From: Schmidtea nova
Lineage: Eukaryota
DNA: 64,000 nt
Direction of reading: 5' to 3'
NCBI GenBank assembly: GCA_044892505.1
Contig: CM097882.1
Coordinates: 2,170,001 to 2,234,000, forward strand
The notes below the pieces were generated by a model. That model worked only from the letters and a program-made list of their open reading frames with translations. It had not been told where the DNA came from and did not search any database. How positions within the stretch are numbered: position 1 is the first letter of the stretch; each line of letters opens with the position of its first letter. A program made the position numbers and the translations under genes. Shown piece by piece: positions 1 to 58,446 of the stretch.

Positions 1-270
1 AATAAAAGTATTTATGACAAGTGGAAAAAGCATCAAACTATTTTGAAACGAAAAAGACTCAGTAAAAAGATTGCGTTTTTGAAGAAGAAATTTCATGTAT
101 TTGGTAGAGGCTACGGTAGAAATGGCATAAAGAAACCTTATGGAATAAGACACATTCGAAAACTGGGGAAATATATTCATCAGAAGGTGCACGGTCCATA
201 TGGCCATGTCAAAGACATAAACAAGTACGGGCCCACCAATCATGATGCTCACAAGAAACGTTATTATTAG
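1..270 (+). CDS. 3' part of secreted acidic/basic protein gene (copy 0; 5' end outside window)
   Basis: Open frame from base 1 (NKSIYDKWKKH...KKRYY-TAG); matches 16483-16752. Confidence 0.8.
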   Translation, partial: NKSIYDKWKKHQTILKRKRLSKKIAFLKKKFHVFGRGYGRNGIKKPYGIRHIRKLGKYIHQKVHGPYGHVKDINKYGPTNHDAHKKRYY

Positions 271-467
271 CTTAATACATTTTTCAGTTGATTTTTTTCA
301 TTTGATTTCATTAAATTTACTGACTATTTGAACTTTTATAAATTATTTTATATAAATTATATCAATTAATTTATATTTATTAAATTATATTTTATTGTCT
401 TAGTCGTATGTAAAAATACGTCAAGTAGAGTTAAAATCCTTTTATATTCGTTTTTGTTCATTTAGAT

Positions 468-572
468 CAGGGGTGTCCATCTTTTCAGATTCCCTGTGCC
501 TCATTAAAAAAAACGAGTTATATTGTGCCACATAAAATATACTAACCGTAAAGATAGCTGATGAACAAAAAA
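468..572 (+). mobile_element. hAT (Charlie3/MER30-like) terminal fragment
   Basis: CAGGGGTGTCCA...GCCACATAAAATATACTAAC...GATAGCTGATGA resembles the MER30 5' end as recalled; preceded by ATTTAGAT (NTCTAGAN-like target); no right end found. Confidence 0.65.
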
Positions 573-849
573 CATAGAATATATATATTTAGTTAACAAT
601 TTTAATTGATTTAAACTTCATTAATTATTGAAATCTTTTTATAATAAATAAAAATATACCATTTTTTAAAATATATTATAGAAATATATTTCGACAGCTC
701 AGCTGTCATGATTAGTCTTTACACAATTTCCATTTCAATAAAAATTGATCTTCTTTATACGTTTATTAGTTATTACATAATCACATGTGCACAATCCATT
801 GAAACTTTTATTAACCCTAGTAAAATTAATTAAAAAATCTCAAAATACA

Positions 850-1130
850 TGTAAATATTGAATTTGTATGTTTACTTTAGGATTAAAGGATATTATGATC
901 AAAGCCTCACAATTCACACTTTCAAAATATTTTTTAAACCCTAGACACATATTTTGAAATTGAATATATCAATGTTTTTCTTGCATGTCTTATTATGCTA
1001 AATAATATTACTCTTTCCACTATTTCTGTCATGCTCTTGAACCCATGTACAGAGATGACAAGCAGTCTCTCCAATGTATGTGGCATTACTCCCATTACAA
1101 GGAAAATGATATATGAGATCTGAAATTAAT
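850..1130 (-). pseudogene. Penelope-like element GIY-YIG endonuclease remnant
   Basis: Minus strand reads LIYHFPCNGSNATYIGETACHLCTWVQEH, later EALIIISFNPK; stops and frameshifts; ends approximate. Confidence 0.7.
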
Positions 1131-1628
1131 ATTTATTTGAAAGTTTTTAGGTTGTCTGTCATTGTACGTCACTCATGGCACTTTGCCTTTGCCACTCCTG
1201 CCTCTGGAATTTTCCATTTTCTCTCTACAACTCCAATGTTTCCTTTGACACTTCAACACTTGGGACAACTTGCTTTTTTTTCCATTTTTGCTTCTGACAT
1301 TTCCCAAATTTGTTAGAGCTCCCACGTTATCATTGACAGCTGTCAAGATACCGCTTTTGTTTTCGTGTTTTGTTTTTGTTTTCCAATTTTGAAATTAATT
1401 TCTGTTTTCTTGCACTTATTAATTATAATTGACCTTTCTCCAGTTTGTGGTTGAGTTTCTTTTCTTTTGTTATTCCTTCCTCATTTCAACTTTTATCCTT
1501 TTCTTTTTTTCTTCTCCGAACTCCAGGATGCTATGTCAATTACCAAGATATTCAAATTGTCTAATATATTATTTGTTTTTTAGGTATCCTCAGCAGTACC
1601 ATAGAAGGGTCTGAATTTTATGGTAATC

Positions 1629-1692
1629 AGTAGGTAGATGTGTGGAGCCGGGAACAAATACATTGCGTGGGTGGCGTGGGTGTGAAAAAAGG
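1629..1692 (+). mobile_element. Truncated Polinton-type left terminus (AGTAGGTAGATGTGTGGAGCC family)
   Basis: Matches the left TIR of the element at 43247 for ~64 bp, then diverges. Confidence 0.65.
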
Positions 1693-1920
1693 CAAACAAT
1701 TTGAACACATCAGAAACTGTATATTATTTGAATTTATTGTTTAGTTTTTCATGGTTTCATAATAAATCCTAATTGTGACTTTAAAAAGCTATATTTTAGA
1801 ATAATAAAAACTGTATACCTACTTTTGGACCAGCCTGTATTTTGAATAATAATTTTTTATTAACGCAAACAAAGAATCAGATTTCTAGTACAACTTTAAT
1901 GTAAATTCCTGTACCCTTTC

Positions 1921-3190
1921 AGTAGGTAGATGTGTGGAGCCGAAAACAGAGACCTTATCACTCATTGCGTGGTCGGGAAAAAAGAACAAAGACATATTCC
2001 CTCCTCCCCCACCGGAGGAGGGGGTAGGAATTTTTTTCATGACTCATCGATGACTCATTATCTTTTGTGAAAAATTTTCTATCTTTTTAAAATTTTTTAA
2101 AAATTTTCTTTATTCTTTTTTTAACTTTTTTAAACTTTTTTTTGAAAAATTTACTCTTTTTTTATAATTTTTTTAATCTTTTTTTAGAATATTTTATTTT
2201 CGAAATATTTTCGATCTTTTTTAAAAATTTTTTTAATCTATTATTTTCGAAAAATTTTCTGTTTTTAAAATTTTTTTTATTTTACCAAACGATGACTCAT
2301 CAAAAATTTTATGACTGATCGAAAAATAATCAATTTTTCCCAACTTCTTCAATTTTCATTATTTTGAAACTTTTTTTGGTTTTTATGACTCATCGATGAC
2401 TCAGCTATTTTTGAGAAGTTATTTTTTAAAATTTTTTACAAATTAAAAAATATTTAAATTGATGACTCATACTTATGTCTCATCGATGACTCACCCAATG
2501 ATGCATTGATGACTCATTTCAAATTTGAATTTTATCACGTCATCAATGACGCATTTCAAATTAAAATTTTTAAAAATTTTAAAAGTACAAGTATCAAAGT
2601 CAAATTTGGTATCGTTCTCAAGGCATTTGCCAGACGCACATAGTTGTATTAATTTTGAAGGTGTCTGATCAAAAAATAAAATTTTGAAAAAAAGAGAAAA
2701 AAACTTAAAGTACCAAGGTTAAAATTGGTATCATTCTCAAGGCATTTGCCAAACGCACAATGTGGTATTATTTTTGAAGTTGTCTGATCGAAAAATAAAA
2801 TTTTGTACCAAAAATTAAAAATTTTAAAAGTTTCAAGTACCAAGGTCAAATTTGGTATCATTCTAACCACCTTCGCTATTTGAACACGATGCTATATAAT
2901 TTCATACCCTTTTTTAAACAACGACATAGTTAACAAAGACATTTCAATGCCAAAAATACTTTAACAAAGACATTTCAATGCCAAAAAACTTAACAAAGAT
3001 ATTTCATTGGTTAAATAATTAAACACAGACATTTCAATACCAAAATAACTAAACAAAGACATTTCAATATTCGTGCATTGTAAGCAATCATGATTAACAA
3101 ACACATTGCAATACATATGCAAGTTAACAAAGACATTACAATGCAGTTGCAAGCCAAATTAACAAATACATACATGCAAGATTAATTTTG
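1921..3190 (+). mobile_element. Polinton-derived non-autonomous fragment, right TIR missing
   Basis: AGTAGGTAGATGTGTGGAGCC start, ATGACTCAT clusters, body homologous to 43247-43990, then degenerate TTAACAAAGACATTTCAAT repeats (2910-3170); right boundary approximate. Confidence 0.55.
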
Positions 3191-3239
3191 TTGTTTCTTT
3201 TTTCTTGATTTCTCTTCCTTTTTATTGGATGTTAATCTG

Positions 3240-3380
3240 CGTATTCCGACGATCCGCCAACACGACAATCCAGCAAGTACGACAATTCGCCAAACGACAA
3301 TCCGCCAAATGACAAACCGCCAACAGACAATCTGCCAACATGACAATCCGCCAACACTAAAAAATTGGCCAACGCTGACA
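3240..3380. repeat. ACGACAATCCGCCAA-type short repeat cluster, probable MULE subterminal repeats
   Basis: Several degenerate GACAATC(C/T)GCCAA units beside the transposase 3' end. Confidence 0.5.
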
Positions 3381-3736
3381 TTTCTAAAAGAAAATATTTG
3401 TAGGTCATCATATTAAAATTAATTCACATGTACGTGTTTAAAAGTTACTTTTTGTCCTTTGTAGTACCGTAAGATTTGAAAACAGTTAACTACGCTAGAA
3501 AACTCAAGTCCTTTGTTGTGTATAGCTCAATGGAAAAATTTATCTAATCAATTTTTGAAGAAAAAGATGATCAAAAAACCCAACAGAATTTGTTTTTATT
3601 AAAATTATTTATTTTATCCTTTAACATTTTTAAACACAAATTACTGAAATGAAAAACAAAAAACTGTTTGTAAATATATTGACAAATTGTTAAAATCACG
3701 TTGCATGGATTATTACGATATAGTTCATCTAATAAC

Positions 3737-5080
3737 TTATTCTGACAAATGCATAAATCCAAAAACTTCCTGAACATAGGCAAGTTTGTCACCCCATTGA
3801 AAATAGTTTTGACACAAATGAATGACGTTTTCATTGGTCCATATGTACTGAGTGCTTTGCTTTTTCTTGTATTTTCCAACATGTATTTCATGAAGTTTTA
3901 ATCGCTCAGTTTGTTCCAAAACTTGCAGTTTAGTCAAAAATTTCCACATTGTTGGATTCGATTGGCCCATCATGACTCTGAAACCATTGTGACAACCCTC
4001 TAAAGAATTGTTGGTTCGTGGAAGTTGCGACAATGTTCTGTCATACATATTCCACTTTTCGATTGGAAAGTTTGGTGCAGTTCTTCTATTTCCACTTCTC
4101 AGGCGACCAATGTAAAAGTCTTCAAAATAATCTGTAATTTTTCGGTAGTTTTCATCGATGTCAAAGGTAATTTACTCAAATGTTTCAACAACATCATCAA
4201 TTGGTATGAAGGCAAGAGCACACAACGACTTGATTAACTTTCGAAATGATTTTTTTTCGACGTATTCTGTTGCCAAACCTTTAGCTTGAACATTTCTCCA
4301 CATCGATTGACACAGATGAAAGAAACAAAAAGACAGTTCGGTGTCTGGCAGGGCTTTTTCAATGGCATTAGACAGTCCAAGCTCAAAATCCACCATAAAA
4401 GATTTTGGTGAAAAATTAAGATTGGGTTGATCAGGCAAACAGTTTTTCACCAAAGTCATTAGACGATCATATGTACATCCCTTCTTGTTTGGGAGAAGCA
4501 CATATAGCAGAGACATGGAGACGTCCATTACAATTGTGAGTAATTGGAAGTAGAGAGAAGGGGCAACATTGAAAGTTCCATCAGCAAACAGGTGTAGAGC
4601 AGTAAACATTTGAATAAAAAATGCTTGGGTTGCAAATCTAACAATTCTCTGTGGATCTTCTTTTCCCGTATCAAATGCAATCCAGTTTGTGTCATCATTG
4701 TTCTTCAGAAACCGTTCTGGAACATCAAAGTCACGTGTCTTAGGAGGATTGTTGTTGATAGGGTCACGATGCCGTTGAATATTTCTGGCAATTGAGGAGG
4801 ATTTTGGCACTTGAGACAGACTTTCTTCGTCAAGAGTCCACAATTCACTATAAAGCTCTTTCGTAGATTTTTCAGATATTTGTGCTTTTTGTTTGATTTG
4901 ACTCCTCAGTTTTTTAACACTTATAATTGGTGGTTCTGGTGGATGAGAATGATGACTACTTTCTACAAATTCTCCAGATGTAGTTACTAGTAGTCAACCA
5001 GTAGTAGTCTTATACCTTTCTTGTATAAGAAAGTTGACATTTGTGATAAAAAATGGATCTGCTCTTGTTAATGTTGTCAC
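3737..5080 (-). pseudogene. Mutator-like (MULE) DDE transposase, frameshifted, with FLYWCH-like N-terminal remnant
   Basis: FADGTF, DFELGL, CFFHLCQSMW and RTNNSLEG motifs; split over ORFs 4172-4843 and 3737-4048. Confidence 0.85.
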
Positions 5081-7003
5081 AATAAAAAATTTCCGAGTTC
5101 CAGATTGGCATCAGTTTTCCCATGTCCGAAATCAGGGTATCTAAACCTGCAACTTCATAAAGAGATGCTGGAACATTCAGCTTAAAGCTAGTTTTTACGA
5201 CATCTGGTTTTGGTGCCAAATTGGAATTTCAGATTATAGATCAATATTTCTATTTATTTAACTAAATACAAAATCCTTCCTTGCTTATTATTAAAGTACT
5301 TAAAATAAGCGGGAAAAATTTTGTGTGAGACATTTGTGATTCAATCACAATTCCCTATAAAGAACAATCAATCAGCTATAAATTTATTGAACTTAGTTAA
5401 TTAAATCATAACTATTACATCATTATTGGTTTCCTATATAACTTGTGACACAAATTATGATGACAGACTCATGATAAATATAATTTCCTTGAAACATATT
5501 TTAGTTGTTCGGCTTTTTTGTGTTTTTATTAAAAATGCGCCATCTGTGGGACACGGAATTTCGGTACTCTATTCTGCGTTTGACTGATTTAGGTACAAAA
5601 TTAAATTGAAATAAAACACCAGTAAAATATCTATTATTGAGATTAACTGCTTCTTTTTCTTTATAACTCTCCAAAAACTTCTTGTTTTGCGTTGGCCTTT
5701 AATAGGTTCAGCTTGCATTTCTTTTGTTAAATTAATCTTCTTAAGTGCATTACATTATTCAAATTGCAAATCCTGCAATGCGTTATGTTATAAAAACAAC
5801 TGCCATTTTTTGTAAATATTTAAATATTTTTAATTTAATATATATATANNNNNNNNNNNNNNNNNNNNNNNNNNNNNNNNNNNNNNNNNNNNNNNNNNNN
5901 NNNNNNNNNNNNNNNNNNNNNNNNNNNNNNNNNNNNNNNNNNNNNNNNNNNNNNNNNNNNNNNNNNNNNNNNNNNNNNNNNNNNNNNNNNNNNNNNATAT
6001 CTTAGTTTAATTAATAATAGTAATACTTAAATATGATATATTAAATGTGAGACTAAATATAATATTTCAATTATTTATTAATAATAATGAATTTTGGGGT
6101 TTTTTGGTACAGGGGCAAAAATAAAAGTAATTGATAAAAGTTTGATACAATAGTTTGAAATTCGTAGTTAAGAGAAATCTAATGTTAAATTAAAATGTGT
6201 AAATATTTGTGTAAAATATTTGGAAAAATTAGCATAGAAGTTCAAACTATTGAAATACCGGAAAGGAAAGTTGCCGAATTCATTGTAGGTAGAGATGTCA
6301 AGGTTCACCGAATCTTAAATTGATGATCTTAAAAAAATGAAAAAATATTCAGCAAGAAGTAGGAAGTCAATTGGAAAAAAATTCGTATTAGAGTGATCAA
6401 TATTTTTTTAAGATCGAAATATTTCATTAAATAAACATTGCGGAGAAAGGATTAACACGTTTATCGTATTATTATATTTTGATAAAGCAATACAAACAAA
6501 AAAGAAAATGGCAGATATTTTGGACCTGTAGAAGTTGTTAAACAAATACATGAAAAAAGGTATGAAATAAAGCTTGATAATGAAACCCGATTGATAAAAA
6601 ACGAGTGGTTAAAGTAATTTAAACGAGGGGTGTGTGAAAATGTAATTTAATTAATTAATTTAATAACCGAATAAATAACAACTTAATGAATTAACTAAAT
6701 GAATTAAAGTTGTGGATTGATGTGGTATGCAAATACCTTATGCTTACATTAATATCGTTGAATAAAAATCTTCATGGAGATTTGTTTGAATATTGCAAAC
6801 AAATTGTGTTGTTTTTGAATTTAATAAATATCTTCTGTTGTTATCAAATGTACGTTATTGATACTAAAAGTATTTTATCTAACAATCATCAATTTTCGGC
6901 ACTGCTTTTTTCATACAAAAAGTTTCTCTGAAAATTCATGATTCATAATTCATGAAAATAAAATAAATTGCAAATAAAAATAAATGCTTACATTCTATTT
7001 CAG

Positions 7004-7341
7004 GCAAATTCAAGTGTAGACTAAGCAAATTTCCTCAGCCTGCAAAATATTACAAATCATGCGACCCATTTCAACTTTCTGAATCATGTGCAAAATTTAA
7101 TCTGTTTCGGAACAAAAAGGTTCGAGGATGGTGGCCATTAATTTACAATCCAAAGGATGAAGATTCAGATGAAGAGGACGGCGAAGAAATAGGGGTAAAC
7201 TTAAGAAAAGTAATATAAATGTAATCATTATTTTTAAAAGGGTTGCGTAGAATTGGAAATGGAATTAGTTACTGCAGAAGAAGCTGAATCGAATCCTGTG
7301 GGTCTTGGAAGATCCGAGCCGATGCCCCTTGAAGCACCAAC
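7004..7341 (+). pseudogene. Isolated two-exon fragment of a ferlin-family gene (last C2 domain region); exons 7004-7194 and 7241-7341
   Basis: NLFRNKKVRGWWPL and [33 protein letters not shown] match the recalled ferlin pattern (GWWP; EAEKNPVGLARNEP); AG/GT sites, 46-nt intron; no adjoining exons found. Confidence 0.8.
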
Positions 7342-9611
7342 GTAAGTAATTTACTATTAAATTTCTATTTTTGAATTGAAATATAAAAAAACTTACTATC
7401 AGAGGAAATGAAAATTTGCATTAGAAATTGCAAATATCTTTAGCGGATTTTGTGTCTAATTTTGTACTGAATTTGGTGAATAAATATCTAACAATAATTA
7501 AAAATAAATTGGAAAAATCTCCGAATCACACATAAATGGCCGAATTCGACGGTCCTAATTTTTTCAGTTACATTTAAAAAATCAGGTATAAATAAATTAT
7601 TAAAATAAAATTTTCATATTGAATGGAAAGCTCTTTGATTAGCATGTCCATTTTCAATTGTAGAGATCAGTGGCGTTTTATGAAATTTGGGCTCCTGCAC
7701 TAAGGATTACAAGGTAACTTAAAAATGTTTTCAGGTTTTTTATTTAGAAAAATACATAATTTAGTATAGACAAATAAATATTTCCTCTCTAATGGCTTGT
7801 GCCAGGATTTCTAGTTGTTTAATCATAAATCGTCGAAGGCTTTTCGAATTTTTATATTATCCGTCAGACTTGTACTTGTTTGCAACATATCTCTCTAGTT
7901 TGGCATAATAATTCCCTGTCACTTTTCGGGATTTCTTTGTTTCTTGCTTTGACTTAGAAAGACAATCATCTTTCATTTTCTGAAGATCTTTAAAAACTAA
8001 AGTTTTAGTAGCTCCTAAAAATGTTAATTGCTCTTCATTTCAATGTTTGAAATCATTTCCGAATACACGGACATCGCGAATTTAATTGTTTTCTCATTTT
8101 CCGTTTTAGCGAATGATGAATTAATAGACATTTGGTCCTCTTTGTGAATGTATTTCGTTAGGTTTTCAGCTAATTCTTTAAGCGCATTTCAGCAATCTTC
8201 TTTATATGAGCAATCAATTCCTTTTTCGTGTTGTAATAACTTTTCACGAAATGATAGACTGTAAATGATACATTCATTAAACTCCAATGGTTGATGATAC
8301 GACATCGATATATATTTATATTAACCAATTTATTTGAGGACTTAATCTTTACACTTCAAAATTTCAAAACAAAATTATAACTCTAATCAATTTATTATAT
8401 TTTCAAAAATTTCACAATCGAAAACTCTTTTAAATCACAAATTTAAAATACATAATTTAGTATAGATAGATAAAGATAATAAGGAATAAAAATATAATAA
8501 AATCCAAATATTAAACGTAAAAAGAATAAAATAAAAACAGCTCTTTAATAACATAAATTAAGATATTAAAAATATCAATTGTTTAAGTTTATACATAATA
8601 AAAACAAAACTTAATAAATAATAGAAACTTTACTTTTTTTCTACATATTAATTTAAATAAAAATAATTTATTATTATATCCATGGGCGCCCATTTACTTT
8701 TTTACTCGTCACAACGTTTGGATTTGAAAATATTTCATTTGACTTCTTTTTTGATTTTGAATTGAAAATAGTGAGTTCTTCTTGGACCATGTAGGATTTT
8801 TTGAAAAAGTAACAAAAAAGGAAAGTTTATTTGATTATTTAAAACAAAAAGGAAAAAATGTTTATTTAATATCATATTAATTACTAATTTAATTACTAAA
8901 TTAATGTCATAATTAAATCCGAGGCACTACACCTTGCGTCTTGTAAAGACTTAGTTATCATAAATCAACCAAACTTCCTCAATATTAACTTCTAGTTTTT
9001 GAAATGATGCTGAATTTGAATTGCAAAATTGGTAAAATAAAATTGCGAAATATTTTACATTTTTAAATTAATTTGACGCTCAGTGTAATTTATTTTTAGC
9101 CGGCCAGATGGATCATTTCTCAGTTTTCTCAATCCGTGCAACACGATCAAATATTTCATAAAATATCGACTAAAATGGCTGCTGATAAAAATCTTTGTCA
9201 TTTTCATGGCGTTATTGATAATTGCACTGTTCATTTACAATTTTCCCGGAAGTATTTCCAATGCAATTGTGACAAAGATGTTTGCGTAGCATTTTTTTGG
9301 TTAGGTCGCAATTCATTATTCGCGTAGCATTTAATCTAATTGGTTTTGGCTGGCGTTTAATCCACTATTTTATCGTATTTAGTAATTAAAATCTAATTGG
9401 TAATGTTAACACGTTGATCGCCAAACCTAACATGAGCTAAAATCGCCGTACGAGCCAAAGTAAACTTATTGACTATTTTGATCAAATTTATAATAATATA
9501 TTATTGATTAATATTACAATGTTTTCGTTAGTGAGCACAATTTTAAAGGATAGTACGAATTTACATAGATAGTCTGACGTGGCACAGGCAAAAGCATCAG
9601 GTGTCAGATAT

Positions 9612-10033
9612 CAGGGCCGGATTAACCCATTCTGGGTCCCTAGACATCTTCTTCTTATTGGGTCCCCTCCCTCTCCCAAAAAAATATAAAATAATAGATG
9701 AAACAAAATAAAATAATGTGAAAAACTAAAACAAATCTTAAATTTTTAATTATAAAAAATATTTAATATACAACAATAAATTTGAAATTTTCTAGAAAAG
9801 ATTGAACAGTTTATTTATAAATTTTAAAAAATTGAAATTTTTTTTAAATGTCTAACAAAAGTAAATATATAAATAATAATAAACTTTATTTAAAAATTCG
9901 GTTTTCTAGTCCTTAATTCATCATAATTAATATTATCCAATTTGGAGAATGATAGACTCTATGAAAACCTATCTTTTCAAAATAGACAGTTTGACGGGGC
10001 CCAGGCATTTGTCTATGTTATGACCCGGCCCTG
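9612..10033. mobile_element. hAT-type MITE
   Basis: TIRs CAGGGCCGGATTAAC / GTTATGACCCGGCCCTG; flanks TCAGATAT / GCAGATAC (6 of 8 match). Confidence 0.75.
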
Positions 10034-10133
10034 GCAGATACATATGACGGAAAAACGTATATAACGCGGCGATAAACGTGCTATAAAATAAAATTAAATA
10101 ATGTTAAAAAATAAAAAACTTAAATTTTTATTA

Positions 10134-10224
<91 letters not shown>

Positions 10225-10301
10225 TAATCATAATCATAATTATCTTATTGTTTGACCTTTGATCTTTTTAAATATTAAAATCAATAATTCCAATAATGGT
10301 A

Positions 10302-10439
10302 AGACTATAGATCAAAATTTCTTTAAATAAGTACACAATATTTCGGCACAGCCTTTATCAAGTGTGTATTAATACACACTTGATAAAGGCTGTGCCGAAA
10401 TATTGTGTACTTATTTAAAGAAATTTTGATCTATAGTCT
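10302..10439. repeat. 138-bp perfect loopless palindrome; each arm holds a minimal hammerhead-like motif
   Basis: 69-bp arms centred at 10370/10371; + strand ACAC-TTGATAA-A-GGC-TGT-GCC-GAAA-TAT-T-GTGT at 10376-10408; flanked by (TA)n. Confidence 0.85.
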
Positions 10440-10459
10440 CACTATTACGGGAATTATTG

Positions 10460-10548
<89 letters not shown>

Positions 10549-11425
10549 CATTAGTTTAATTACTCAATACCGAAAATGGGAAATAGAATCAAGTGACTTG
10601 TGATAATAGTAGAAATAACAGCGAAATATCTAAACACGATAAAACCTAAATGATATTATTAAAATTACAAAAATATAGTCTCAATTGAAAGGCTTGAAAG
10701 GTTCCTCGGATTTGGGAAAGATATAAAAATACAAACTAAACTGTTTGTAAAACATTTTCGTCTATCATTTGATTTCATGTCACCAACACAATCTTTATCA
10801 TTAGCTTTTAATTCACTGTTGAGACAAAACTGCCATGCAGAACTTTTGACACTCTTAAAATTAATTTTTTAGATAAAAAATATTTATTCAAAAAATAAAT
10901 TTTAAAATTAGGAAAAATTTCATTATAAATTTTAATTTCAGTCGACCAGACGGATCATTCCTCAGTTTCCTGAATCCATTAAACACGATTAAATACTTTA
11001 TCAAATATCGGTTGAAATGGATTTTGATCAAGATTTTCGTGATTTTTATGGCTGTTTTAATTATTGCACTTTTCATTTACAATTTCCCCGGAAGTATTTC
11101 CAATTCAATTGTTACAAAAATGTTTGGATAGATATTTTTATGGAGCTTGATTTCTCCCCTCATAATGAGATGAATTATTGTCCGTTTCTGGTGACTTTCC
11201 CATTTTATAACGAATTATATAAATATTCTTCTTTATAGCTAAATGAATTTCAAATAATAATAATAATTAATATAATTTTATATATTATAATTTTACTATA
11301 TATTTCGACAGACATCCTGTCATCTTTAGGTAAAAGTCATATAGAAAATACTGTTATTTCAATTTAGACAAACAAATTATAAAATATTATTAAATCAATT
11401 TTAAATATTATTTTAATCTTTTATA

Positions 11426-12527: not shown

Positions 12528-12564
12528 TACATTAAAAAATCAATCTAAAAATTATTTTTATTAA

Positions 12565-15697: not shown

Positions 15698-15782
<85 letters not shown>

Positions 15783-15940: not shown

Positions 15941-15942
15941 AA

Positions 15943-40886: not shown

Positions 40887-40917
<31 letters not shown>

Positions 40918-44069: not shown

Positions 44070-44149
44070 CTTCTGTTTTTTTTCTAACGAGGATTTTGGC
44101 ACCTTATTCTAGTCTGATCAGGTTTTAAGTATAACAATGAATAGGCAGA

Positions 44150-47048: not shown

Positions 47049-48199
47049 NNNNNNNNNNNNNNNNNNNNNNNNNNNNNNNNNNNNNNNNNNNNNNNNNNNN
47101 NNNNNNNNNNNNNNNNNNNNNNNNNNNNNNNNNNNNNNNNNNNNNNNNNNNNNNNNNNNNNNNNNNNNNNNNNNNNNNAAAATTTTGTTTAAAAGAAGAA
47201 AAGACAGATTTGATTTGAATTTAATTATAAAAACGCAGAAAATTTACTACGCACAGAATTTAATTTTAAAAATGCAGAAAATTTTCAACGCAGAAGAATT
47301 GAAATTTACAACGCAAAATTGAAACTTATAACGCAGAAAATTTCAACAAGGTGAGCTCCGTTGCCGAAACTACTTGTCACTAAATACTCTCTTTTGAGTT
47401 CTTGCTGTCGATAGAAGGACTTACGCATCTACTTTCTTTTCGGTCCTATCGCATGATTTTCCACCTAACGATCTATTACTTTCCGATATCAACAATATTG
47501 GTGGGTTGTTGATCGTCAATATGACCTTGACCTTGTTATGGCTCACATCAACAACTCAACACATAAAACATTAGATTAACCATCTTGTTGCCCGTCACAA
47601 TGTAACGTTGGTAATGCAACAAATGGTTGGGTATTCGCAATCAGTGAGCGTCGAAAATTCGAAACTATGATTGACCGAATATCTCCTGGGTCCAAGAGCT
47701 ACCGATAGAAAGTTTAATGCCCATTTTTGCCCCTTATGTAACATCAATTCTTAATCTGCTGCGAAAAATTAAACGATTATTATACGAAAGAAAACAACCA
47801 TATTGTCGTAATTTATCATGGAAGTCGAGTGCGAGTCACTATTGAGCGATTCAATTTACGTCAACGGGTGTGAGATGCGTTTATGATTACTGTAAAAATT
47901 TTGCAATTTGCTAATTTTCATGCAATATTCTCAAGCAAACCGTATCATCCATTATTGCCCTCATTTTAATAAACTACTCCAATAAAATACGTATAATTAA
48001 TTAAAACAAAACACAAATCTGTATATACTAACAATAAGATAAAAGAAATAAATAATATACGCAATATATACAACATTAGTTCTCATTGTCACTCTCCAAT
48101 CGACAAATCGATTGTTTCCACCGAGATTTTACGGAGCTGTCCAAGAAGTCATGCTTGCTGATGCCGTTTTCAACGGTCCCGAACTCCTTTGCTTGGACG

Positions 48200-48650
48200 C
48201 TATTTCTTCGGTCGAGTGGTTGTAGGTGTGACCGCTGTTTCCAAAGATTGGACATGCCCATTTGTCGGAGCGGGGAACAATTCTAGGCTTGGATATTCAC
48301 TCTTTGGCAAAACTGCCGCCAAAATTCCGGCATCGATTTTTAATTTCACTATCTCGGCATCCCGTTGCCTCAATTGCATTTTTACGGCCCGCAGTTGGAG
48401 TGCGTCCTTGGCCGCTTGGCCCTGTAGTAGCTGGATTTGTTTCCGTATCTTTTCGGTGCCCTCTACATTCGTCCAAGTGGACTCCACTTTTCGGCACCGA
48501 GAATTTTTCCATTCGCTCCGTCGTCCCTCAGAGTTCGCTATACAATAATTTTTTCTCTTCCTCCATCTCAAACACGCGGGCAGTTAGATGGCGCATGCTT
48601 CGATGGATTCCGGTCAGTTGCTCCGATATTTGCTCCAGCTTTGTTTCCAT
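48200..48650 (-). pseudogene. Disrupted coiled-coil ORF of unknown origin
   Basis: METKLEQISEQL... hits TGA after 40 codons; a frameshift links it to the 48200-48571 frame; GC-richer than flanks. Confidence 0.4.
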
Positions 48651-48950
48651 TTTTATCTAAACAGTTATATCGAAGTTAGAATTAATTAACCCTATCGTTG
48701 TAAATACTCAAAATTTTCCAAAAACAGTTAATAATGTACTAATTGTAATTCCAGAACAATACATCTATATCTATATCAATATAAATTTATTATTTAAAAA
48801 AAAATTTTTTTGTGGCATTCCAACATCAGTAATTTACATTGTTATGTTTGCAAATTAGTTATTTAAGTTGGTTAATTTTGACTAGTACTAGATGAGTGCT
48901 TGAGGATTTGTAAGTGCCCAAAAGAGTCTCCCAAAAATTATTGTGGGGAC

Positions 48951-49213
48951 AATTCTGCCCTCCTTATCAAATAGACCGTAACTGACAAAACTACAAAAAT
49001 CGAGTTAGAGGCGTCAACTGTATGCAGTTGCAATTAACCTTCATTCTGCTTAGCGATAAGACCGTATCTAGTCCGAGGCCTTAGAAATTTGATTACTTAC
49101 ATCGACCGTATCTGCTCATGGCGGTGGTATGGCAGAATTGAAAACACGTTTTGTTATTTATCTCCTAAGTGTATTTTTGCAGTTACGGTCTATTTGATAA
49201 GGAGGGCAGAATT
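48951..49213. mobile_element. 263-bp MITE with 34-bp TIRs
   Basis: AATTCTGCCCTCCTTATCAAATAGACCGTAACTG and its exact reverse complement. Confidence 0.8.
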
Positions 49214-49398
49214 GGGGTGCCTGTGTGTGTAATGTAGGATTTACTGTGATTAACAAAGATAATATTAAATAACGAATTAACAAATATCGAACTATAAACT
49301 ATATTTTTGGAAAACAAAAATGTTACTCACGTAGTACAGAGATGAAGTTTGATTTTCTTGTTATATTCTTATAAATCGAATTAGTTTATGTTTTCTTG

Positions 49399-49850
49399 TA
49401 TCCGGTATAACGATATTTTATAGAAAAATATTTGGTAGGAAAAAGATGTTGAAATTGACTTTGGTTGGGTTTCCTTTTATCCGGATATTATAACGATATT
49501 TTATAGAAAAGTATTTGGTAGGAAAAGGATGTTGAAGTTGACTTTGGTTGAGTTTCCTTTTATCCGGATACTATAACGATATTTTATAGAAAAATATTTG
49601 GTAGGAAAAAGATGTTGAAATTGACTTTGGTCAAGTTTCCTTTTATCCGGATACTATAACGATATTTTATAGAAAAGTATTTGGTAGGAAAAGGATGTTG
49701 AAGTTGACTTTGGTTGGGTTTCCTTTTATCCGGATATTATAACGATATTTTATAGAAAAGTATTTGGTAGGAAAATGGATGTTGGAATTGGCTTTGGTTG
49801 AGTTTCCTTTTATCCGGATATTATAACGATATTTGGTAGGAAAAGGATAT
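49399..49850. repeat. 83-bp minisatellite, ~5.5 copies
   Basis: TATCCGG anchors near 49399, 49478, 49561, 49644, 49727, 49811. Confidence 0.9.
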
Positions 49851-50429
49851 TCTTTAGAAATTTTCTTTTAATATTTGCAACAATTTACTTTTAACAATTT
49901 TAATAAAATTGTCCGTAATATTAAGTTTAAATTCAATTAATCAATTTTCTTAATTTTTTTGTTATTAGCCTTACTATATCTATTTGCTGTAGTAAGCTAA
50001 TTTAAAATTTTAAAATTCAAAATTTCTAATTTTTTATAAAACCCAAAAATAACAATTAACAACAAAAGGGGGGGGTCCTCGGTGACTGTGAGGGAGCCGA
50101 CCATAATAATGACGGCGCTTACAACAAAATATAAAAATAACAAAATTGTTAACATAATACAATTGTTGCCCAACATTTCTGTACATTACATACATCATGA
50201 CCCATTTACGGTGGACATAACAGATAAATAAACATAACAAAATCAAAAAAATCATTTGCACCGAGATTGTTAAAAATCTTTGAGGTTTTCTAAGGTAATT
50301 TCACACTTTGTGGTCACTAAGTTCTCGATTTTTCTCGAATTTTTCCAAGATCTCAAATGTTATCAAGTCAATCATTTCAGTCAATCACTATATATCCTGT
50401 TATCCTGAAAACAAAAGCAATTCGCACAT

Positions 50430-50830
50430 TTAGTTCATTCACAAAATCATCATCAAAGGGGTTATCACGATCTCAATTCAAGGATCAATTATTTCTTCAA
50501 AATCACATTTATTCGGGGGTATTTTATAGTCATTAACTTCATCCGAAATGTTAACATTTTCTTTCTGTTTATTAATTTAAAGCTCAAGTCATCCATAATA
50601 ATATCCTAACACTATTGTCTATCTTGCTTTTTAGTTCATTCACAAAATCATCATCAAAGGGGTTATCACGATCTCAATTCAAGGATCAATTATTTCTTCA
50701 AAATCACATTTATTCGGGGGTATTTTATAGTCATTAACTTCATCCGAAATGTTAACATTTTCTTTCTGTTTATTAATTTAAAGCTCAAGTCATCCATAAT
50801 AATATCCTAACACTATTGTCTATCTTGCTT
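50430..50830. repeat. Perfect ~200-bp direct tandem duplication
   Basis: 50430-50630 repeated from 50631. Confidence 0.9.
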
Positions 50831-51633
50831 AAAATTAAAAAAAATGTTATTGAAATTTTAATGATATTTATCTTTGAAAATTTTCCGAGGCCTTAGCAAC
50901 AGAAGCGGTTACAACTATTGCAAAAAAGGAAAACTCGGGTATCTAAACCTTAAGATTTTCATGTAGATAAAAGCGAGGGGATAGAATATTTAATTTTAGA
51001 CTACAAAATTAGTTTTCCCCTGCTCCTTTACCCCTTAAAACGGTAAATTTTCAATTTTTAAAGAATATATATAGAAGATTTTCAAAATCAATTTGTTCTT
51101 ATTGGCTCGTTTATATTATGGGAATTTCAAATCCCATTATATATTTATTGATTTTACTGCAGCTAATTTTAGCAAGAAGATTTCCCTCTTTCTCGGTTGA
51201 AATTATCGGTAATTTATAATTTTCGTTTTTTTACATGGTTAACTTGGTTTAGGTAGCTTCCGTGGATCGAATGCAACTTCAGGGACAACAAGAACAACGG
51301 AAAATCAGCCAACGTTGGAATTATTCAATGACTATTTTTATTTCAAATTATGAATTAGATTATTGATAATTGTAACTCTTTTAATTTTAAAAAAGTAATT
51401 TTTGTGTATTTTAACTAAATATATGGATCCTTTGGTTGTATTTCATTTTAATAAATATTTAATTTATGTTTGCTTTTTATTCTTGATTTTTAAGCAGTAT
51501 GTTTGTGATTGCTCTTATTGATTGTGGTTGAATTGAAGCTATATTTGTCACCAAGTAGGTTTCGAAATTATTCTTGTCAGATTTAATAAAATCCGTTTCG
51601 TTCATTTTTCGAAATTATTTCGATCCATATCTA

Positions 51634-51717
<84 letters not shown>

Positions 51718-54700
51718 AACTGCAAGGTCATGTGACAGAGAAATAAAATAAATATAGATGAAAACCTCAGAAACAAATTCTAAAATGGTATAATTAATAA
51801 TTGACAATTATAACTTCAAAAATGATGGTAATATAAGTCAACATTTTAAAAATGATAATAATAGAAATAATAACACATATGCAAATAATAAAATAAAATA
51901 CTAAGCCTGGGTTGACCGGGCATGACTAGTCAACCCACGCTAAACAACCAAGAAATTTACCCTTCCGTACAGTTATCTGACCAAATTAATAGGGATGAGG
52001 ATGTCTTCGAATTCAAATATCAGTAGTGATTGATAGGTCACGATTTGGCGCGTGAAACTGAGGTTCTTTGCGCACTCGTCTGATTCCGATGATAGAGTAT
52101 CTTCTTTCGTGAATCTCCGCCTTGGAAATAATTCGACTTAACTCGGAAGGAGTTCGTTGTCCGTATGGAATTTTTCAGGAATTCCTGCTAATTCTTGGTC
52201 CGGCAGAAATATTTTTGCAACTTCTTGACTTGCTAAAGATTCCGAATGAAATTTTCGCAGAGGTCTGCTTAGAGAAAATTTCACCAGTTAGTAGTAACAA
52301 TATTCTGACTTAATCCATTTTTATGGTGGTATATATAGTTGCTTGAATTGGTATTTTATTTGGTGTATTAAAACAAATTGTTCTAGAAGGAATTTTCCGA
52401 TTCTTGAAAATTAATTTCAATAATTTTACACGAAATTGAATTATTATTTTTGCATAAAATTTTAAATAACTTCTAAATAATTAATTTTTTATTTAAAATT
52501 CCATTTTTAATCTAATTTTTTCCTAATTTAATTGATTTATCATAATTGCTAACTAAATTAATTTTCCTTCGTATTTTTTTAAATTTTTACACTAAAATTT
52601 AAAAATTTTCCTTCAAAAAAGGCGTTAGTTTTTTCTAATGTATTATTCTATTACACAAATGATATTTTCATGTTATACATGTGATTTTCACGTATACATT
52701 CACCACGCTTTTATTCGTTTCAATTTTTTCAACGTTTCCAATCGATTATTCCCTGTGTTCTGCTGTTACTGAGTTGTACTTGGTGTGTTTGGATTTCAAA
52801 AAATTTCAAATCTACTTCTTGCGCGCTCTCTACATGGATTGTAATACCGCGCTATTTAAACAAACCTCAAATTTTGCCCAACAATATATATTCATTCTCA
52901 AATTATTCACCAAAACGATGAATGCTCCTGGCAATCCCATTTCCTGTCACCCAATTTTGGTTCAAGTACGCCACATCGCTTAACCCACCAAAGAGAGTCA
53001 GGACAAGAGGTCATTTATTGCCCATCAGGTCGCGAGACCATCAGGATGTGCCCTTATTTATTTTCCATCGGAGGTTCTGAGGGTTTACCCACGAATAATC
53101 ATGAAATTTTATGATTCAAAATATTTATTGAATACCATTCACATAACATGATTAAATCCGATGTTCATTACAGATTACCATTAGCAATATACACAAAACA
53201 TACCTACTCACCCAGTTAACTGGCATGTGAAAACACGAAATCAAAATTTGTGCTAACTACAAACTAACTGCATTACTCCAACTGATTTTTTGCGTCTATT
53301 TATACTAAAATAGACTGACACCCACGCAGTTTTTCATTCAAATAATTATTTTGACTATTAACTTATTTTATTAGCTTTAATAAATGATTATTTATTAATT
53401 TTTTGTAATTTTAATTTTATAATTTGATTTATTTATTTCTACAATATTTGTTTTTAATTCCGTTAAATAATGTGTGTATCCATTGTATTTGTATATTAAT
53501 TGATTGTTTAAAACAATAAAATTTAATTTAATTCTGTTTTTATTCTTACCTCTGTTATTTTTCCAATATTTCAATGGGGATTTTTCCTATAATTTTTAAT
53601 GAATTATTTTCTTTAATCTGATGTCAATTTTATTCTTTGATCATGCCTTGCTTTATTTTTATACATGCAATGATCTTCCCCATTCAATTCTCGTGCAGTC
53701 CTTCGTGTGTAAATGCGACCTGAAGTCAAATTGTGGGCTCTCTTTTGAGATGCCGCTTTTCTATCGTTTAAGCCCTATCTTGACCGTCTTATCGAATGCG
53801 GTTCATATGATTACTATTATACTTTACTGTTTTTATTTTCTTTTGCGTTAGTTTACTTTATCAGGGGTTTTAAAATTGATTCTCTTTTGAATATTTTTGA
53901 TAAATTCACACAAAATTTATTTTCGATTTTGCCAGCCAACATATTTTAGAAAAATTGGTAAAGGAATCAAATAGCTTTGGTTACGAGAATCGCTTCCAAA
54001 GGAGTTTTGGGCTGATATTAATATTAAACTGTTTAATTTCTACAATTATTCCTGATGTAATTTGACATTATTAGAATTGGTTTAAATGAATAAATCCGGT
54101 TTTCTTTGACAAAATGTTGTGTGTTTTATTGCTGAAAATTTACGAAAGTTTTTATTATTATTTAAAAACATTTTTATTTGACCAATCTTTACACAGTTAA
54201 TCTTTCAAAAAGACTACACTTTCATGAGAATTGAACATATTGAATGCGTCGTTCTGGTCTACTGAACAATAATCTCCGTTACCCATATTTACAATTTATT
54301 TTGATTCGCTAACATTATAGACGTAACATACTTTCATTCACCCAAATCTGTTCCTAACAGCCGTCACGCTTCAATGGAAACTGTTCATAAAGACCTGATG
54401 CTCATCATGAAGTAGAGGAATATTTTATAATCGCAAATTCCCGTTGAATATAACTAGCAGTAGCGGCCGACGGAGTAATTGCAACATCCGGTTGCATTAA
54501 ACTATAAATGTCGCTAGGAAATTTATAAATACATTTTGTAAATTTCCTAAGCAATTTTTTCCTTATTTTAATTAACTAAAATTTGATATAAAAATCTAAA
54601 TGAATAAAAACGAATTTATAAGGATTTTAACTCTACATGAAGCCATTTTTACCTTGCATTTATAAAAGGCCATGGCAATTAAATATAATTTATCTATCAT

Positions 54701-54755
54701 TATTATCATCAAATAGTCAGTAAAATAAATAAAATCAACTGAAAAATGTATTAAG

Positions 54756-55565
54756 CTAATAATAACGTTTCTTGTGAGCAGCATGCTTGGTGGGCCCGTA
54801 CTTGTTTATGTCTTTGACATGGCCATATGGACCGTGCACCTTCTGATGAATATATTTCCCCAGTTTTCGAATGTGTCTTATTCCATAAGGTTTCTTTATG
54901 CCATTTCTACCGTAGCCTCTACCAAATACATGAATTTTTTTCTTCAAAAACGCAATCTTTTTACTGAGTCTTTTTCGTTTCAAAATAGTTTGATGCTTTT
55001 TCCACTTGTCATAAATACTTTTATTATATTTCAAACCTTTCTTATATCCTCTATCACCATATATCTCACTATGTTCAGGTGCGCCGTAATTATAAGAATA
55101 AACTTTTGTCGTTCCATCATTTACATCGCGATATTCACCTGCGTGATTATTATCACCGTAATTTGATGTCAGCGCATTACCATGATATTCTTTTTTCGGT
55201 TCATTATTGTCGTAATTATCTCCCGAAACATCTACTTGATATTCGCCTTTGTCAATAACATTATACGTATTTCCTAAATCGTTATTTCCGCGTTCAGTGT
55301 CCACATGAAGATTATCTGAATTTCCATCAGACTGAAATTCTTTCTCTATCTCGTCTATTTTTCCGTTCTCCGATGTCCCTTTATATGGAATATTAGAAAG
55401 ACCATTTACTCCGCTGTCCTCATCAACATAAGTTGTATGTAAGATATGAGAACCCAGGCTAGGGGTATCAGAATCAGTTAGCGTTTCACCAACTGTGTCA
55501 TAGGAGTCAAAAGCAGATATTTCATAAAAAACAAAAACAAAAACAATTGTTTTAAACCAATCCAT
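54756..55565 (-). CDS. Secreted acidic/basic protein (copy 3)
   Basis: Open ORF; differs from copy 2 only at L4F and FN/YD. Confidence 0.8.
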   Translation of the reverse strand: MDWFKTIVFVFVFYEISAFDSYDTVGETLTDSDTPSLGSHILHTTYVDEDSGVNGLSNIPYKGTSENGKIDEIEKEFQSDGNSDNLHVDTERGNNDLGNTYNVIDKGEYQVDVSGDNYDNNEPKKEYHGNALTSNYGDNNHAGEYRDVNDGTTKVYSYNYGAPEHSEIYGDRGYKKGLKYNKSIYDKWKKHQTILKRKRLSKKIAFLKKKIHVFGRGYGRNGIKKPYGIRHIRKLGKYIHQKVHGPYGHVKDINKYGPTKHAAHKKRYY

Positions 55566-56611
55566 TTCTGAATAAATGTCCCGTCTCATTTGCACTTATA
55601 TATACCAGTGAACGTAATTAATTTTTTTCCAAATATTTTAAAGTCACGCTTTTCCCATTTAATCCAGAAATTTATGATTTATGGAAATAAAAATTTCTAA
55701 AATTTTGTAAATCATGATTTAAAATTTGTACTTAGAGCGTTGATTTTTAAAAAAAAAGTTTAAAAAATCATATAGAGAATAAATTCTTTTCATTAATAAA
55801 ATACTCTTTTTTTTAATTAGGACATTTAAAAATATTAAAAAATACTTCTTAAACAAAATTAAAATAATTCTTTCAGTTAAATACTCTTTTCATGGATTAC
55901 TCAAAGATTAATCTCATTTTAATTTTAATTTTTAAATCTTATCAAAGGCTATATTAAAGACGACGTTAAATCTGATTGAAAGTATAAATACACTCATTTT
56001 TTGTCGATAGCAGAGTTTATTAATATATAATAATAAGGTAATAGTGTTAAGCATTCTCCGCAAGGTTTATTAAATAAAATAAATTGATCTTAAAAGATTC
56101 TCATCATATTCTAATTATTGAAAATTAATAAATAAAAATTTTAAATTTTTCAAATAATTTTTGAAAAATATTAATATTTATTTTATTTAATCTATCTCAA
56201 GAATAAATTCTTATTTGTTTCATTAATTAATATTAAATCAGGATTTAGGAGAAAGAAAATATTCAGCCAGAAGTAGGAAGTCAATCGGAAAGAATTTCGT
56301 ATTAGAATGATCAGAATGTTTTTAATATTAAAATATTCCATTTAATAAACATTGCGAAGANNNNNNNNNNNNNNNNNNNNNNNNNNNNNNNNNNNNNNNN
56401 NNNNNNNNNNNNNNNNNNNNNNNNNNNNNNNNNNNNNNNNNNNNNNNNNNNNNNNNNNNNNNNNNNNNNNNNNNNNNNNNNNNNNNNNNNNNNNNNNNNN
56501 NNNNNNNNNNNNNNNNNNNNNNNNNNNNNNNNNNNNNNNNNNNNNNNNNNNNNNNNNNNNNNNNNNNNNNNNNNNNNNNNNNNNNNNNNNTTTGATCTTT
56601 TTTTATTATTA

Positions 56612-56808
56612 TCAATAATTCTCATAATGACTATAGATCAAAAATTTTTTTTTAAACAATAACACAATATTTCGGCACAGCCTTTATCATGTGTGTATTT
56701 CTGAAATAAATAAATAAATAAATACACACTTGATAAAGCTGTGCCGAAATATTGTATTATTGTTTATAAAAAAAAATTTTGATCTATAGTCATTATGAGA
56801 ATTATTGA
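56612..56808. repeat. Hammerhead-like inverted repeat, related subfamily, 20-nt spacer
   Basis: TTTCGGCACAGCCTTTATCA...TTGATAAAGCTGTGCCGAAA core shared with 10302-10439. Confidence 0.8.
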
Positions 56809-56810
56809 TA

Positions 56811-56893
<83 letters not shown>

Positions 56894-56916
56894 CCTTTGA
56901 TCTTTTTTTATTATTA

Positions 56917-57096
56917 TCAATAATTCTCATAATGACTATAGATCAAAAATTTTTTTTTAAACAATAACACAATATTTCGGCACAGCCTTTATCATGTGTG
57001 TATTTCTGAAATAAATAAATAAATAAATACACACTTGATAAAGCTGTGCCGAAATATTGTATTATTGTTTATAAAAAAAAATTTGATCTATAGTCA
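56917..57096. repeat. Second tandem copy of the hammerhead-like inverted repeat
   Basis: Near identical to 56612-56808; separated by (TTA)n; runs into an N gap. Confidence 0.75.
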
Positions 57097-57630
57097 NNNN
57101 NNNNNNNNNNNNNNNNNNNNNNNNNNNNNNNNNNNNNNNNNNNNNNNNNNNNNNNNNNNNNNNNNNNNNNNNNNNNNNNNNNNNNNNNNNNNNNNNNNNN
57201 NNNNNNNNNNNNNNNNNNNNNNNNNNNNNNNNNNNNNNNNNNNNNNNNNNNNNNNNNNNNNNNNNNNNNNNNNNNNNNNNNNNNNNNNNNNNNNNNNNNN
57301 NNNNNNNNNNNNNNNNNNNNNNNNNNNNNNNNNNNNNNNNNNNNNNNNNNNNNNNNNNNNNNNNNNNNNNNNNNNNNNNNNNNNNNNNNNNNNNNNNNNN
57401 NNNNNNNNNNNNNNNNNNNNNNNNNNNNNNNNNNNNNNNNNNNNNNNNNNNNNNNNNNNNNNNNNNNNNNNNNNNNNNNNNNNNNNNNNNNNNNNNTTAG
57501 AAATTTTGTTTTTATATAAATCATAAATTTCTGGATTAAATGGGAAAAGCGTGACTTTAAAATATTTGGAAAAAAATTAATTATATTCATTGGTATATAT
57601 GTGCTAATGAGACGGGACGTTTATTCAGAA

Positions 57631-58446
57631 ATGGATTGGTTAAAAACAATTTTTTTTGTTTTTGTTTTTGTTTTTTATGAAATATCTGCTTTTGACTCCT
57701 ATGACACAGTTGGTGAAAGGCTAACTGATTCTGATACCCCTAGCCAGGGTTCTCATTTCTTACATACAACTTATGTTGATGAGGACAGCGGAGTAAATGG
57801 TCTTTCTAATTTTCCATATAAAGGGACATCGGAGAACGGAAAAATAGACGAGATTGAGAAAGAATTTCAGTCTGATGGAAATTCAGATAATCTTCATGTG
57901 GACACTGAACCCGGAAATAACGATTTAGGAAATACGTATAATGTTATTGACAAAGGCGAATATCAAGTAGATGTTTCGGGAGATAATTACGACAATAATG
58001 AACCGAAAAAAGAATATCATGGTAATGCGCTGACATCAAATTACGGTGATAATAATCACGCAGGTGAATATCGCGATGTAAATGATGGAACGACAAAAGT
58101 TTATTCTTATAATTTCGGCGCACCTGAACATAGTGAGATATATGGTGATAGAGGATATAAGAAAGGTTTGAAATATAATAAAAGTATTTATGACAAGTGG
58201 AAAAAGCATCAAACTATTTTGAAACGAAAAAGACTCAGTAAAAAGATTGCGTTTTTGAAGAAGAAATTTCATGTATTTGGTAGAGGCTACGGTAGAAATG
58301 GCACAAAGAAACCTTATGGAATAAGACACATTCGAAAACTGGGGAAATATATTCATCAGAAGGTGCACGGTCCATATGGCCATGTCAAAGACATAAACAA
58401 GTACGGGCCCACCAAGCATGCTGCTCACAAGAAACGTTATTATTAG
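57631..58446 (+). CDS. Secreted acidic/basic protein (copy 4, 271 aa)
   Basis: Open ORF with an in-frame 6-bp expansion in the signal peptide. Confidence 0.8.
   Translation: MDWLKTIFFVFVFVFYEISAFDSYDTVGERLTDSDTPSQGSHFLHTTYVDEDSGVNGLSNFPYKGTSENGKIDEIEKEFQSDGNSDNLHVDTEPGNNDLGNTYNVIDKGEYQVDVSGDNYDNNEPKKEYHGNALTSNYGDNNHAGEYRDVNDGTTKVYSYNFGAPEHSEIYGDRGYKKGLKYNKSIYDKWKKHQTILKRKRLSKKIAFLKKKFHVFGRGYGRNGTKKPYGIRHIRKLGKYIHQKVHGPYGHVKDINKYGPTKHAAHKKRYY

Follow-up and report, generated by a model that had tools for sequence, protein, structure and literature searches.

What kind of gene stays open in several copies amid the wreckage of transposons, and what might its product be for? This question is raised by a 64,000-nt stretch of DNA (hereafter the window; positions 2,170,001 to 2,234,000 of contig CM097882.1, assembly GCA_044892505.1), in which intact open reading frames (ORFs) for a protein with a hydrophobic leader, an acidic half and a basic half lie between broken mobile elements. 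We found that these ORFs make up a genuine gene family that is lineage-restricted, single-exon and locally amplified. For the product we tentatively favour, short of calling it probable, a secreted, self-associating (self-condensing) precursor of a matrix or adhesive material that would be cross-linkable through Tyr.

Intact single-exon gene copies

All coordinates of the copies start at the ATG of MDWLK, a start that was chosen because the alignment with the N-terminus of the only relative (see below) supports it. Copy c1 (15943-16752, + strand) is a complete single-exon ORF of 269 aa, with a leader at residues 1-18, an acidic part at 19-171 and a basic part at 172-269. Copies c2 (41085-41894, +) and c3 (55565-54756, −) are complete as well and have the same length of 269 aa. 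Copy c4 (57631-58446, +), with which c3 lies head-to-head, is a complete ORF of 271 aa, the two extra residues resulting from a 6-nt in-frame insertion in the leader. A partial copy, c0 (1-270, +), is cut by the start of the window and retains the last 89 codons and the stop, which by tblastn are 100% identical to c1 residues 181-269. Beyond these five, tblastn detected no copy in the window, degenerate or otherwise. The first-pass annotation of this DNA had listed four complete intronless ORFs plus a partial one, all open, and both the ORF listing and tblastn agree with it. Its counts for c1 were also exact: 269 aa with 24 Tyr, seven YG dipeptides, no Cys and a KRKR at 196-199, 70 aa from the end, and a last stretch of 98 aa holding 23 Lys, 8 Arg, 8 His, 3 Asp and no Glu. 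At 29% GC, the chance of a 269-codon open stretch is P ~1e-10 per start and ~2e-5 for the whole window, so the ORF is no chance product; a relative recognisable at the protein level (E 4e-28) also exists. An antisense ORF of 130 codons (16342-16734, −, with an equivalent in the same place in every copy) was read as a by-product of the codon composition of the sense strand and not as a gene.

What the four complete copies have in common is a compact unit only, consisting of ~157 nt upstream, the ORF and ~190 nt downstream. The upstream part of this unit in c1 (15786-15942, +) marks the point at which homology between c1, c2 and c3 begins, the farther flanks being unrelated. A TATA-like box, TATATATAA, spans 15904-15912 in it, 31 nt upstream of the ATG, and an in-frame stop occupies 15910-15912; judged from these letters, the region is a putative promoter. 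The shared 3' region (16753-16940, + in c1; ~190 nt) differs by indels between c1/c2 and c3/c4. In c4 the 5' unit is cut by a gap ending at 57496; this run of N (57097-57496) removes the upstream region of the copy, 134 nt 5' of its ATG. A long (AAT)n microsatellite (15697-15780) adjoins the 5' boundary of the c1 unit, is shorter and interrupted before c2, and is absent before c3.

Two origins of the copies were considered and rejected. Processed retrocopies do not fit, since the copies share the ~157 nt upstream with the TATA-like box and a poly(A) tract is lacking from the end of the unit. The other idea, that the ORF resides in the terminal repeats of some large element, was suggested by c2 and c3, which form inverted 1-kb repeats (99.2% identical, 12.8 kb apart) around an interior that holds only debris of long terminal repeat (LTR) retroelements; c1 and c4 misfit this pattern.

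Architecture of the predicted protein

The leader, MDWLKTIVFVFVFYEISA (MDWLK-TIVFVFVFY-EISA, then FDS), contains a hydrophobic core of nine residues, with Ile at −3 and Ala at −1, and its pattern is kept in the relative (...AVYESSG, then LDS). The mature protein has a mass of 28.7 kDa and contains no Cys in any of the four complete copies. Its acidic half (residues 19-171; 153 aa, rich in Asp, Asn, Gly and Tyr) carries a net charge of −23 and its basic half (172-269; Lys, Arg, His, Tyr and Gly) one of +28, while the net charge per residue is +0.02 and the fraction of charged residues 0.30. These values confirmed the acidic half and the strongly cationic His/Tyr/Gly tail that had been described for the protein. 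The segregation of charge is extreme, with a sequence charge decoration (SCD) of −12.8 versus −0.85 ± 0.75 in shuffled sequences, none of 1000 shuffles being as low. The switch from acidic to basic (about residue 172) precedes KRKR (196-199) by some 25 residues. Because KRKR is just one among nine dibasic sites, the idea that it has a special standing was rejected. A neuropeptide precursor was rejected too, both Gly-dibasic amidation sites and repeated peptide units being absent.

Tyr residues fall on a nine-residue register, at positions 101, 109, 118, 127, 136, 145 ... 160 and 169 in the acidic part and at 218, 227, 238, 247 and 256 in the basic part. Eight Tyr pairs are spaced at lag 9. Among 5000 shuffles, 1 had as many pairs at that lag and 12 had as many at some lag no greater than 20. 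In the alignment of six sequences, nine Tyr never vary. Since the periodicity runs through both the acidic (101-169) and the basic (218-256) part, the halves look like one design. The register and the extreme charge segregation are both new in this analysis. An AlphaFold model computed from the six-sequence alignment gave a mean predicted local distance difference test score (pLDDT) of 33, no domain, and no helices other than two of low confidence (177-214 and 230-244); the protein is predicted to lack a stable fold.

A single relative in the databases

An exhaustive HMMER search of 1.84 billion cluster representatives returned one relative, P0001 (UniParc UPI000605E280; an uncharacterised predicted protein of 367 aa, E 4e-28). 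By BLASTP and alignment, each half of this protein matches family residues 1 to ~199 at 37-43% identity, and the model fuses two tandem paralogues; like the family studied here, the relative is thus tandemly duplicated. Shared features include a leader ending in ...VYE-S-[AG] followed by [FL]DSY-TVGE, the motifs NYGDNN, GEYQ and DLG-x-Y, the motif Y-[KR]-KG-x-x-Y-x-K-x-IY at the onset of the basic block, and a Tyr every 8-10 residues. The two differ in their C-terminal parts: the first copy in the relative departs from the ORF just past its KRR, and the last 67 residues of the second (301-367) match the family gene only in a shifted frame (window 16509-16754; tblastn E 3e-6 to 1e-5), so that the DNA of the tail is homologous but is read differently in the model. 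The annotated product consequently lacks the cationic tail. This mis-framing may be a real break or an error of modelling or assembly.

No other search recovered a family. The sole match in a Pfam scan at E <= 1 was a sub-threshold one to N_NLPC_P60 (13.9 bits against a cutoff of 25.4; c1 and c4), PHROGs had no match to the family, and a sequence search of the PDB gave a chance match only (E 0.13). In a word-index search the c1 query found nothing and the relative found itself alone. With the family alignment as query, no relatives were detected in IMG/VR, GTDB genomes or JGI metagenome contigs, and the metagenome contigs contained no exact match to a 37-nt stretch of the ORF. The first-pass annotation had recognised no family and had proposed an amplified, lineage-specific effector or structural gene whose product has a hydrophobic leader. 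Pfam, the PDB and PHROGs were indeed blank, P0001 stood alone among the 1.84 billion representatives, and the searches together with the copies support a lineage-restricted, amplified gene with a plausibly cleavable leader. It had also named a strong match to a transposon or viral protein as grounds for abandoning the proposal; Pfam, PHROGs, the 1.84-billion search, IMG/VR, GTDB genomes and JGI metagenome contigs gave none.

Divergence between the copies

Copies c1 and c2 are separated by 15 substitutions in the ORF, 13 of them non-synonymous, and c2 and c3 by three in 810 nt. The variants of c4 form a mosaic, being c1-type at some sites and c2/c3-type at others, and this mosaic, together with the three differences in 810 nt between c2 and c3 despite their unrelated flanks, points to gene conversion. 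In two pairs the ORF was significantly more alike than the 5' unit of the same copies (c2-c3, 3/810 vs 5/157, P = 0.004; c3-c4, 11/810 vs 8/133, P = 0.002), a difference that would be explained by conversion tracts centred on the ORF or by selective constraint. Both the mosaic and the greater likeness of the ORF fit concerted evolution of a dosage family. Across the copies, 17 variable codons are non-synonymous and three synonymous, with pairwise dN/dS values of 1.1-1.6.

These numbers bear on the alternative that the copies are non-working genes, that is, a young, unexpressed or decaying ORF that rides along in repeat-rich DNA or has been captured by a mobile element, its intact look being due to recency or to a single locus assembled repeatedly. 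Between c1 and c2 the ORF differs by 1.85% (no indels), close to the 2.1-3.7% substitutions of their flanks (with 15 indel events in 4.8 kb), and a dN/dS around 1 is what such a gene would have. The alternative also draws on the neighbours, which are all transposon debris, on the single contig per copy, on the absence of the product from a collection of 15 billion proteins, and on the inverted 1-kb repeats carrying c2 and c3, which could be read as terminal repeats. It is opposed by a relative of only ~40% identity that nevertheless keeps the leader, the motifs and the spacing of Tyr, as such conservation needs long-term selection on the protein. Nor does it account for a 269-codon ORF beyond chance at 29% GC, for a promoter-ORF-3' unit shared in unrelated flanks without poly(A), clear terminal repeats or a transposase, for the lack of any match to transposon or viral protein families, or for two pairs in which the ORF is kept significantly better than the 5' unit belonging to it. 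We therefore consider a non-working gene distinctly unlikely.

Candidate functions of the product

In the material-precursor reading, gene conversion would keep the copies alike and high gene dosage would allow bulk production. The product would enter the secretory pathway by means of its 18-residue leader, and the whole mature protein, a "diblock polyampholyte", would be the working unit. Its oppositely charged blocks would drive a coacervate-like self-condensation in secretory granules or after release, and the evenly spaced Tyr, lying near Lys and His, could then be cross-linked oxidatively by 3,4-dihydroxyphenylalanine (DOPA)-quinone or dityrosine chemistry. Outside the cell this would yield a material, for example the shell of an egg or cyst, a cement, or a layer resembling cuticle. 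Secretion, condensation, cross-linking and the role in a tissue are all steps that we infer.

Two known kinds of material resemble this design, though neither is a relative. Trematode vitelline (eggshell) proteins are of ~29 kDa, Cys-free, with 12-15% Tyr, and become joined by DOPA-Lys/His cross-links (PMC11727788). They are secreted, abound in Tyr, Lys, His, Gly and Asp, and are stored as globules. By composition and size, the putative product here (28.7 kDa, no Cys, Tyr at 9.2%) would count among such quinone-tanned precursors, but a strict segregation into acidic and basic blocks is not described for them. In the cement of the sandcastle worm, oppositely charged partners, amongst them the polycations Pc-1/2/4/5, coacervate and are cured via DOPA oxidation, and one component, Pc-3A, joins an acidic N-terminal block to a Lys/Arg-rich C-terminal block (PMC9999432), as in the family. 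Unlike this cement and the mussel foot proteins, the family owes its acidity to Asp and Glu and not to phosphoserine, carries both charges on one chain and is without tandem consensus repeats, and the exhaustive HMMER search found no sequence relatedness to either.

Several points weigh against a material precursor. Tyr makes up 9% of the protein (9.2%), below the 12-15% of trematode vitelline proteins (PMC11727788). The Pfam TES domain (PF08034 / IPR012615) was unmatched even at E <= 1, and a clean repeat consensus is absent, the periodicity being one of Tyr only. The leader is plausible as a signal peptide as judged by a rule of thumb only. The dN/dS of 1.1-1.6 is indistinguishable from neutrality (P = 0.78) and therefore gives no sign of recent purifying selection, and the intact frames are weakly informative, with P ~0.27 for no stop and P = 0.08 for no indel (2.5 expected); the strong argument for constraint is the relative outside the window. 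Finally, the layout fits antimicrobial precursors too.

That last point leads to the alternative put forward by the first-pass annotation, namely an acidic propeptide, a cleavage site at KRKR and a cationic antimicrobial tail. Here the acidic half would neutralise or chaperone the tail, cleavage by a convertase at KRKR, and possibly at further dibasic sites, would free one or more cationic peptides rich in His, Tyr and Gly, and these would attack microbial membranes or bind metals, with amplification and amino-acid changes reflecting diversifying selection. The order of leader, acidic part and cationic part is as proposed, the 70-aa segment past KRKR has a net charge of +17 plus 7 His, and a dibasic KRR in the first half of the relative aligns with KRKR. 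AlphaFold suggests, at low confidence, the helices at 177-214 and 230-244, and the top helical hydrophobic moment, 0.76 at 227-241, was matched by 73 of 2000 shuffles. The dN/dS of at least 1 among the copies would suit diversifying selection, but the excess of amino-acid changes is non-significant.

Precedents exist for this arrangement. Hydra arminins and periculins are genus-restricted multigene families with a leader, an anionic N-part and a cationic C-part (PMC6369191, PMC11767717, PMC6217004), the same order as in the family, and arminin acts via its cationic C-terminal peptide, arminin 1a-C, of 31 aa and charge +13 (PMC6217004). The family tail differs in being 70-98 aa long, full of Gly, Pro and Tyr and far above typical mature peptides, with a charge boundary (~172) offset from the proposed cleavage site. 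The cationic part of periculin has 8 Cys (PMC11767717), a feature that the Cys-free copies do not share. BLASTP of c1 against arminin 1a-C (sequence from PMC6217004) gave an E of 2.4, indicating no relatedness, and in the exhaustive HMMER search similarity was likewise absent to any deposited antimicrobial precursor. The C. elegans nlp-29 cluster provides a parallel of another kind, in which Gly/Tyr-rich secreted products with antimicrobial activity are encoded by tandem clusters that have duplicated and expanded within lineages under selection (PMC2453101). The exhaustive HMMER search detected no homology between the family and nlp-29-type proteins. Products of the nlp-29 type are small peptides with no long acidic domain.

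The cationic-peptide proposal was thus sustained in the order of its parts and not in its details: the charge switch is offset from KRKR, there are eight dibasic sites besides KRKR, and the 153-aa acidic part bears conserved periodic Tyr that would be unneeded in an inert propiece. For the first two of these reasons, a reading as pro-region, cleavage site and peptide is possible and not favoured, and we regard antimicrobial precursors as a doubtful, though real, contender. The other option offered by the same annotation, a K/G/Y/H-rich adhesive or matrix protein, fits the periodicity and the charge features somewhat better.

Were the source a parasite or symbiont, or an animal that is venomous or salivates, the protein might instead be an effector delivered into the cells of another organism, and its basic tail would target the nucleus or nucleic acids. 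This role would suit an orphan product that is putatively secreted and disordered, whose gene is amplified and whose copies differ mainly by amino-acid changes, and on direct reading KRKRLSKKIAFLKKK fits the classical bipartite nuclear-localisation pattern (KR, 10 residues, KKK). Such a pattern is, however, expected by chance in a tail with 32% Lys/Arg, and the role would explain neither the Tyr periodicity nor the long acidic block. We judge a delivered effector highly improbable.

Returning to the material precursor, a bolder version of it would place the family in an undescribed class of secreted biomaterial, restricted to one small animal lineage, with both partners of a complex coacervate on one chain and a nine-residue Tyr register. 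This is unlikely in our estimation; if true, the single-chain coacervate would do with one protein what tube worms do with two-component glues, and its gene would be amplified for bulk secretion. In this version, dibasic processing could in addition free His/Tyr-rich cationic peptides and so produce a self-disinfecting material. Whatever its role, the gene, if expressed, encodes an unannotated, taxon-restricted secreted protein with blocks of opposite charge, a nine-residue Tyr register, no Cys and no fold. Designs of this kind are wanted as models of self-coacervating, oxidatively curable adhesives and shells, and also as sources of cationic peptides. Annotation pipelines overlooked the gene here and mis-modelled its sole relative; masking or fusion of amplified genes in repeat-rich surroundings is the probable cause. 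In other respects the finding is of an ordinary type, invertebrate-like genomes commonly having orphan secreted families, and it has no bearing on a long-standing open question.

Copy number and arrangement

How many copies the genome holds depends on the assembly. The window contains eight runs of N (5849-5996, 22324-22473, 29095-29233, 35565-36302, 47049-47178, 56361-56590, 57097-57496 and 62569-62712), none of which lies inside a gene copy, so no copy has a reading frame that spans an assembly gap. Each copy sits on a separate gap-bounded contig, c0 on 1-5848, c1 on 5997-22323, c2 on 36303-47048, c3 on 47179-56360 and c4 on 57497-62568. By self-BLAST, a large repeated block has its first copy at 1-11563 and equals 16483-28029 at 99.4-99.9% identity, which gives c0 and c1 a period of 16,482 bp, and both blocks have a gap at an equal relative place. 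In the sequence they share, c0 and c1 have no differences in 270 nt, and five in 5571 nt (5.6 kb) downstream, and the two may be one locus assembled twice.

A block with c1 (11558-18172) is homologous, at 95-98% identity, to 37360-43308, which carries c2, and c3 and c4 lie in an inverted pair (54327-55700 vs 58875-57497) of 97.8% identity. It could be that c1 and c2 are alleles, and c3 and c4 likewise. The flanks of c1/c2 are unrelated to those of c3/c4, so at least two loci are real. The claim of five copies had therefore to be qualified: four complete copies and a tail are present in the assembly, in which four distinct sequences occur in at least two unrelated flank contexts, while the number itself is assembly-dependent (one contig per copy, c0 identical to c1), and the true haploid copy number could be anywhere between 2 and 5 or more.

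Two MULE transposase fragments (4172-4843, −, and 20654-21325, −) lie within the 99.9%-identical blocks and differ by one residue, and a gap follows at the matching relative position after both of these blocks. Such pairing of MULE blocks and gaps would be expected if a tandem duplication were very recent or had been assembled twice.

Surrounding mobile elements

The window is AT-rich (~29% GC), crowded with debris of invertebrate-type DNA transposons and unlike human DNA, and no tRNA or Rfam family was found in it. The transposase and polymerase genes around the family had been called broken, and we found the same: MULE, piggyBac-like and Tc1-like DDE_3 sequences are fragmented, and a DNA polymerase B (PolB) gene is distributed over three ORFs. 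An LTR retroelement has left pieces of its reverse transcriptase and integrase at 45570-46958 (+), in a block whose GC of ~38% exceeds that of the remaining window.

A 9.3-kb element (28030-37359) interrupts the large repeat in its second copy, whereas the first copy retains the empty site at 11558-11563. The element has terminal inverted repeats of ~1 kb (28082-29022 vs 37283-36341, 99.3% identical), termini that start with AGTAGG... and a flanking 6-bp duplication, CACAGA. A 6-bp duplication with 5'-AG ends is the signature of Polinton/Maverick elements. Inside the element, a 196-aa ORF (33904-34494, +) contains a run of hexapeptide repeats (SHDCDK / SPDCDK) and had no matches in Pfam and PHROGs, and the interior at 31078-32654 is similar to 62067-63860, which adjoins the PolB fragments. 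The latter (59850-62077, −) derive from a Polinton-type polymerase, which is split into the three ORFs and has an N-terminus with an endonuclease-VII-like zinc motif. Its best matches were environmental ENA, JGI and Logan contigs at 55-74% identity, with arthropod matches at 33-36%. The contigs of four of the PolB matches showed a Polinton-type context, and one of them (L002) carried a full Polinton gene set, including an integrase and an A32-like ATPase.

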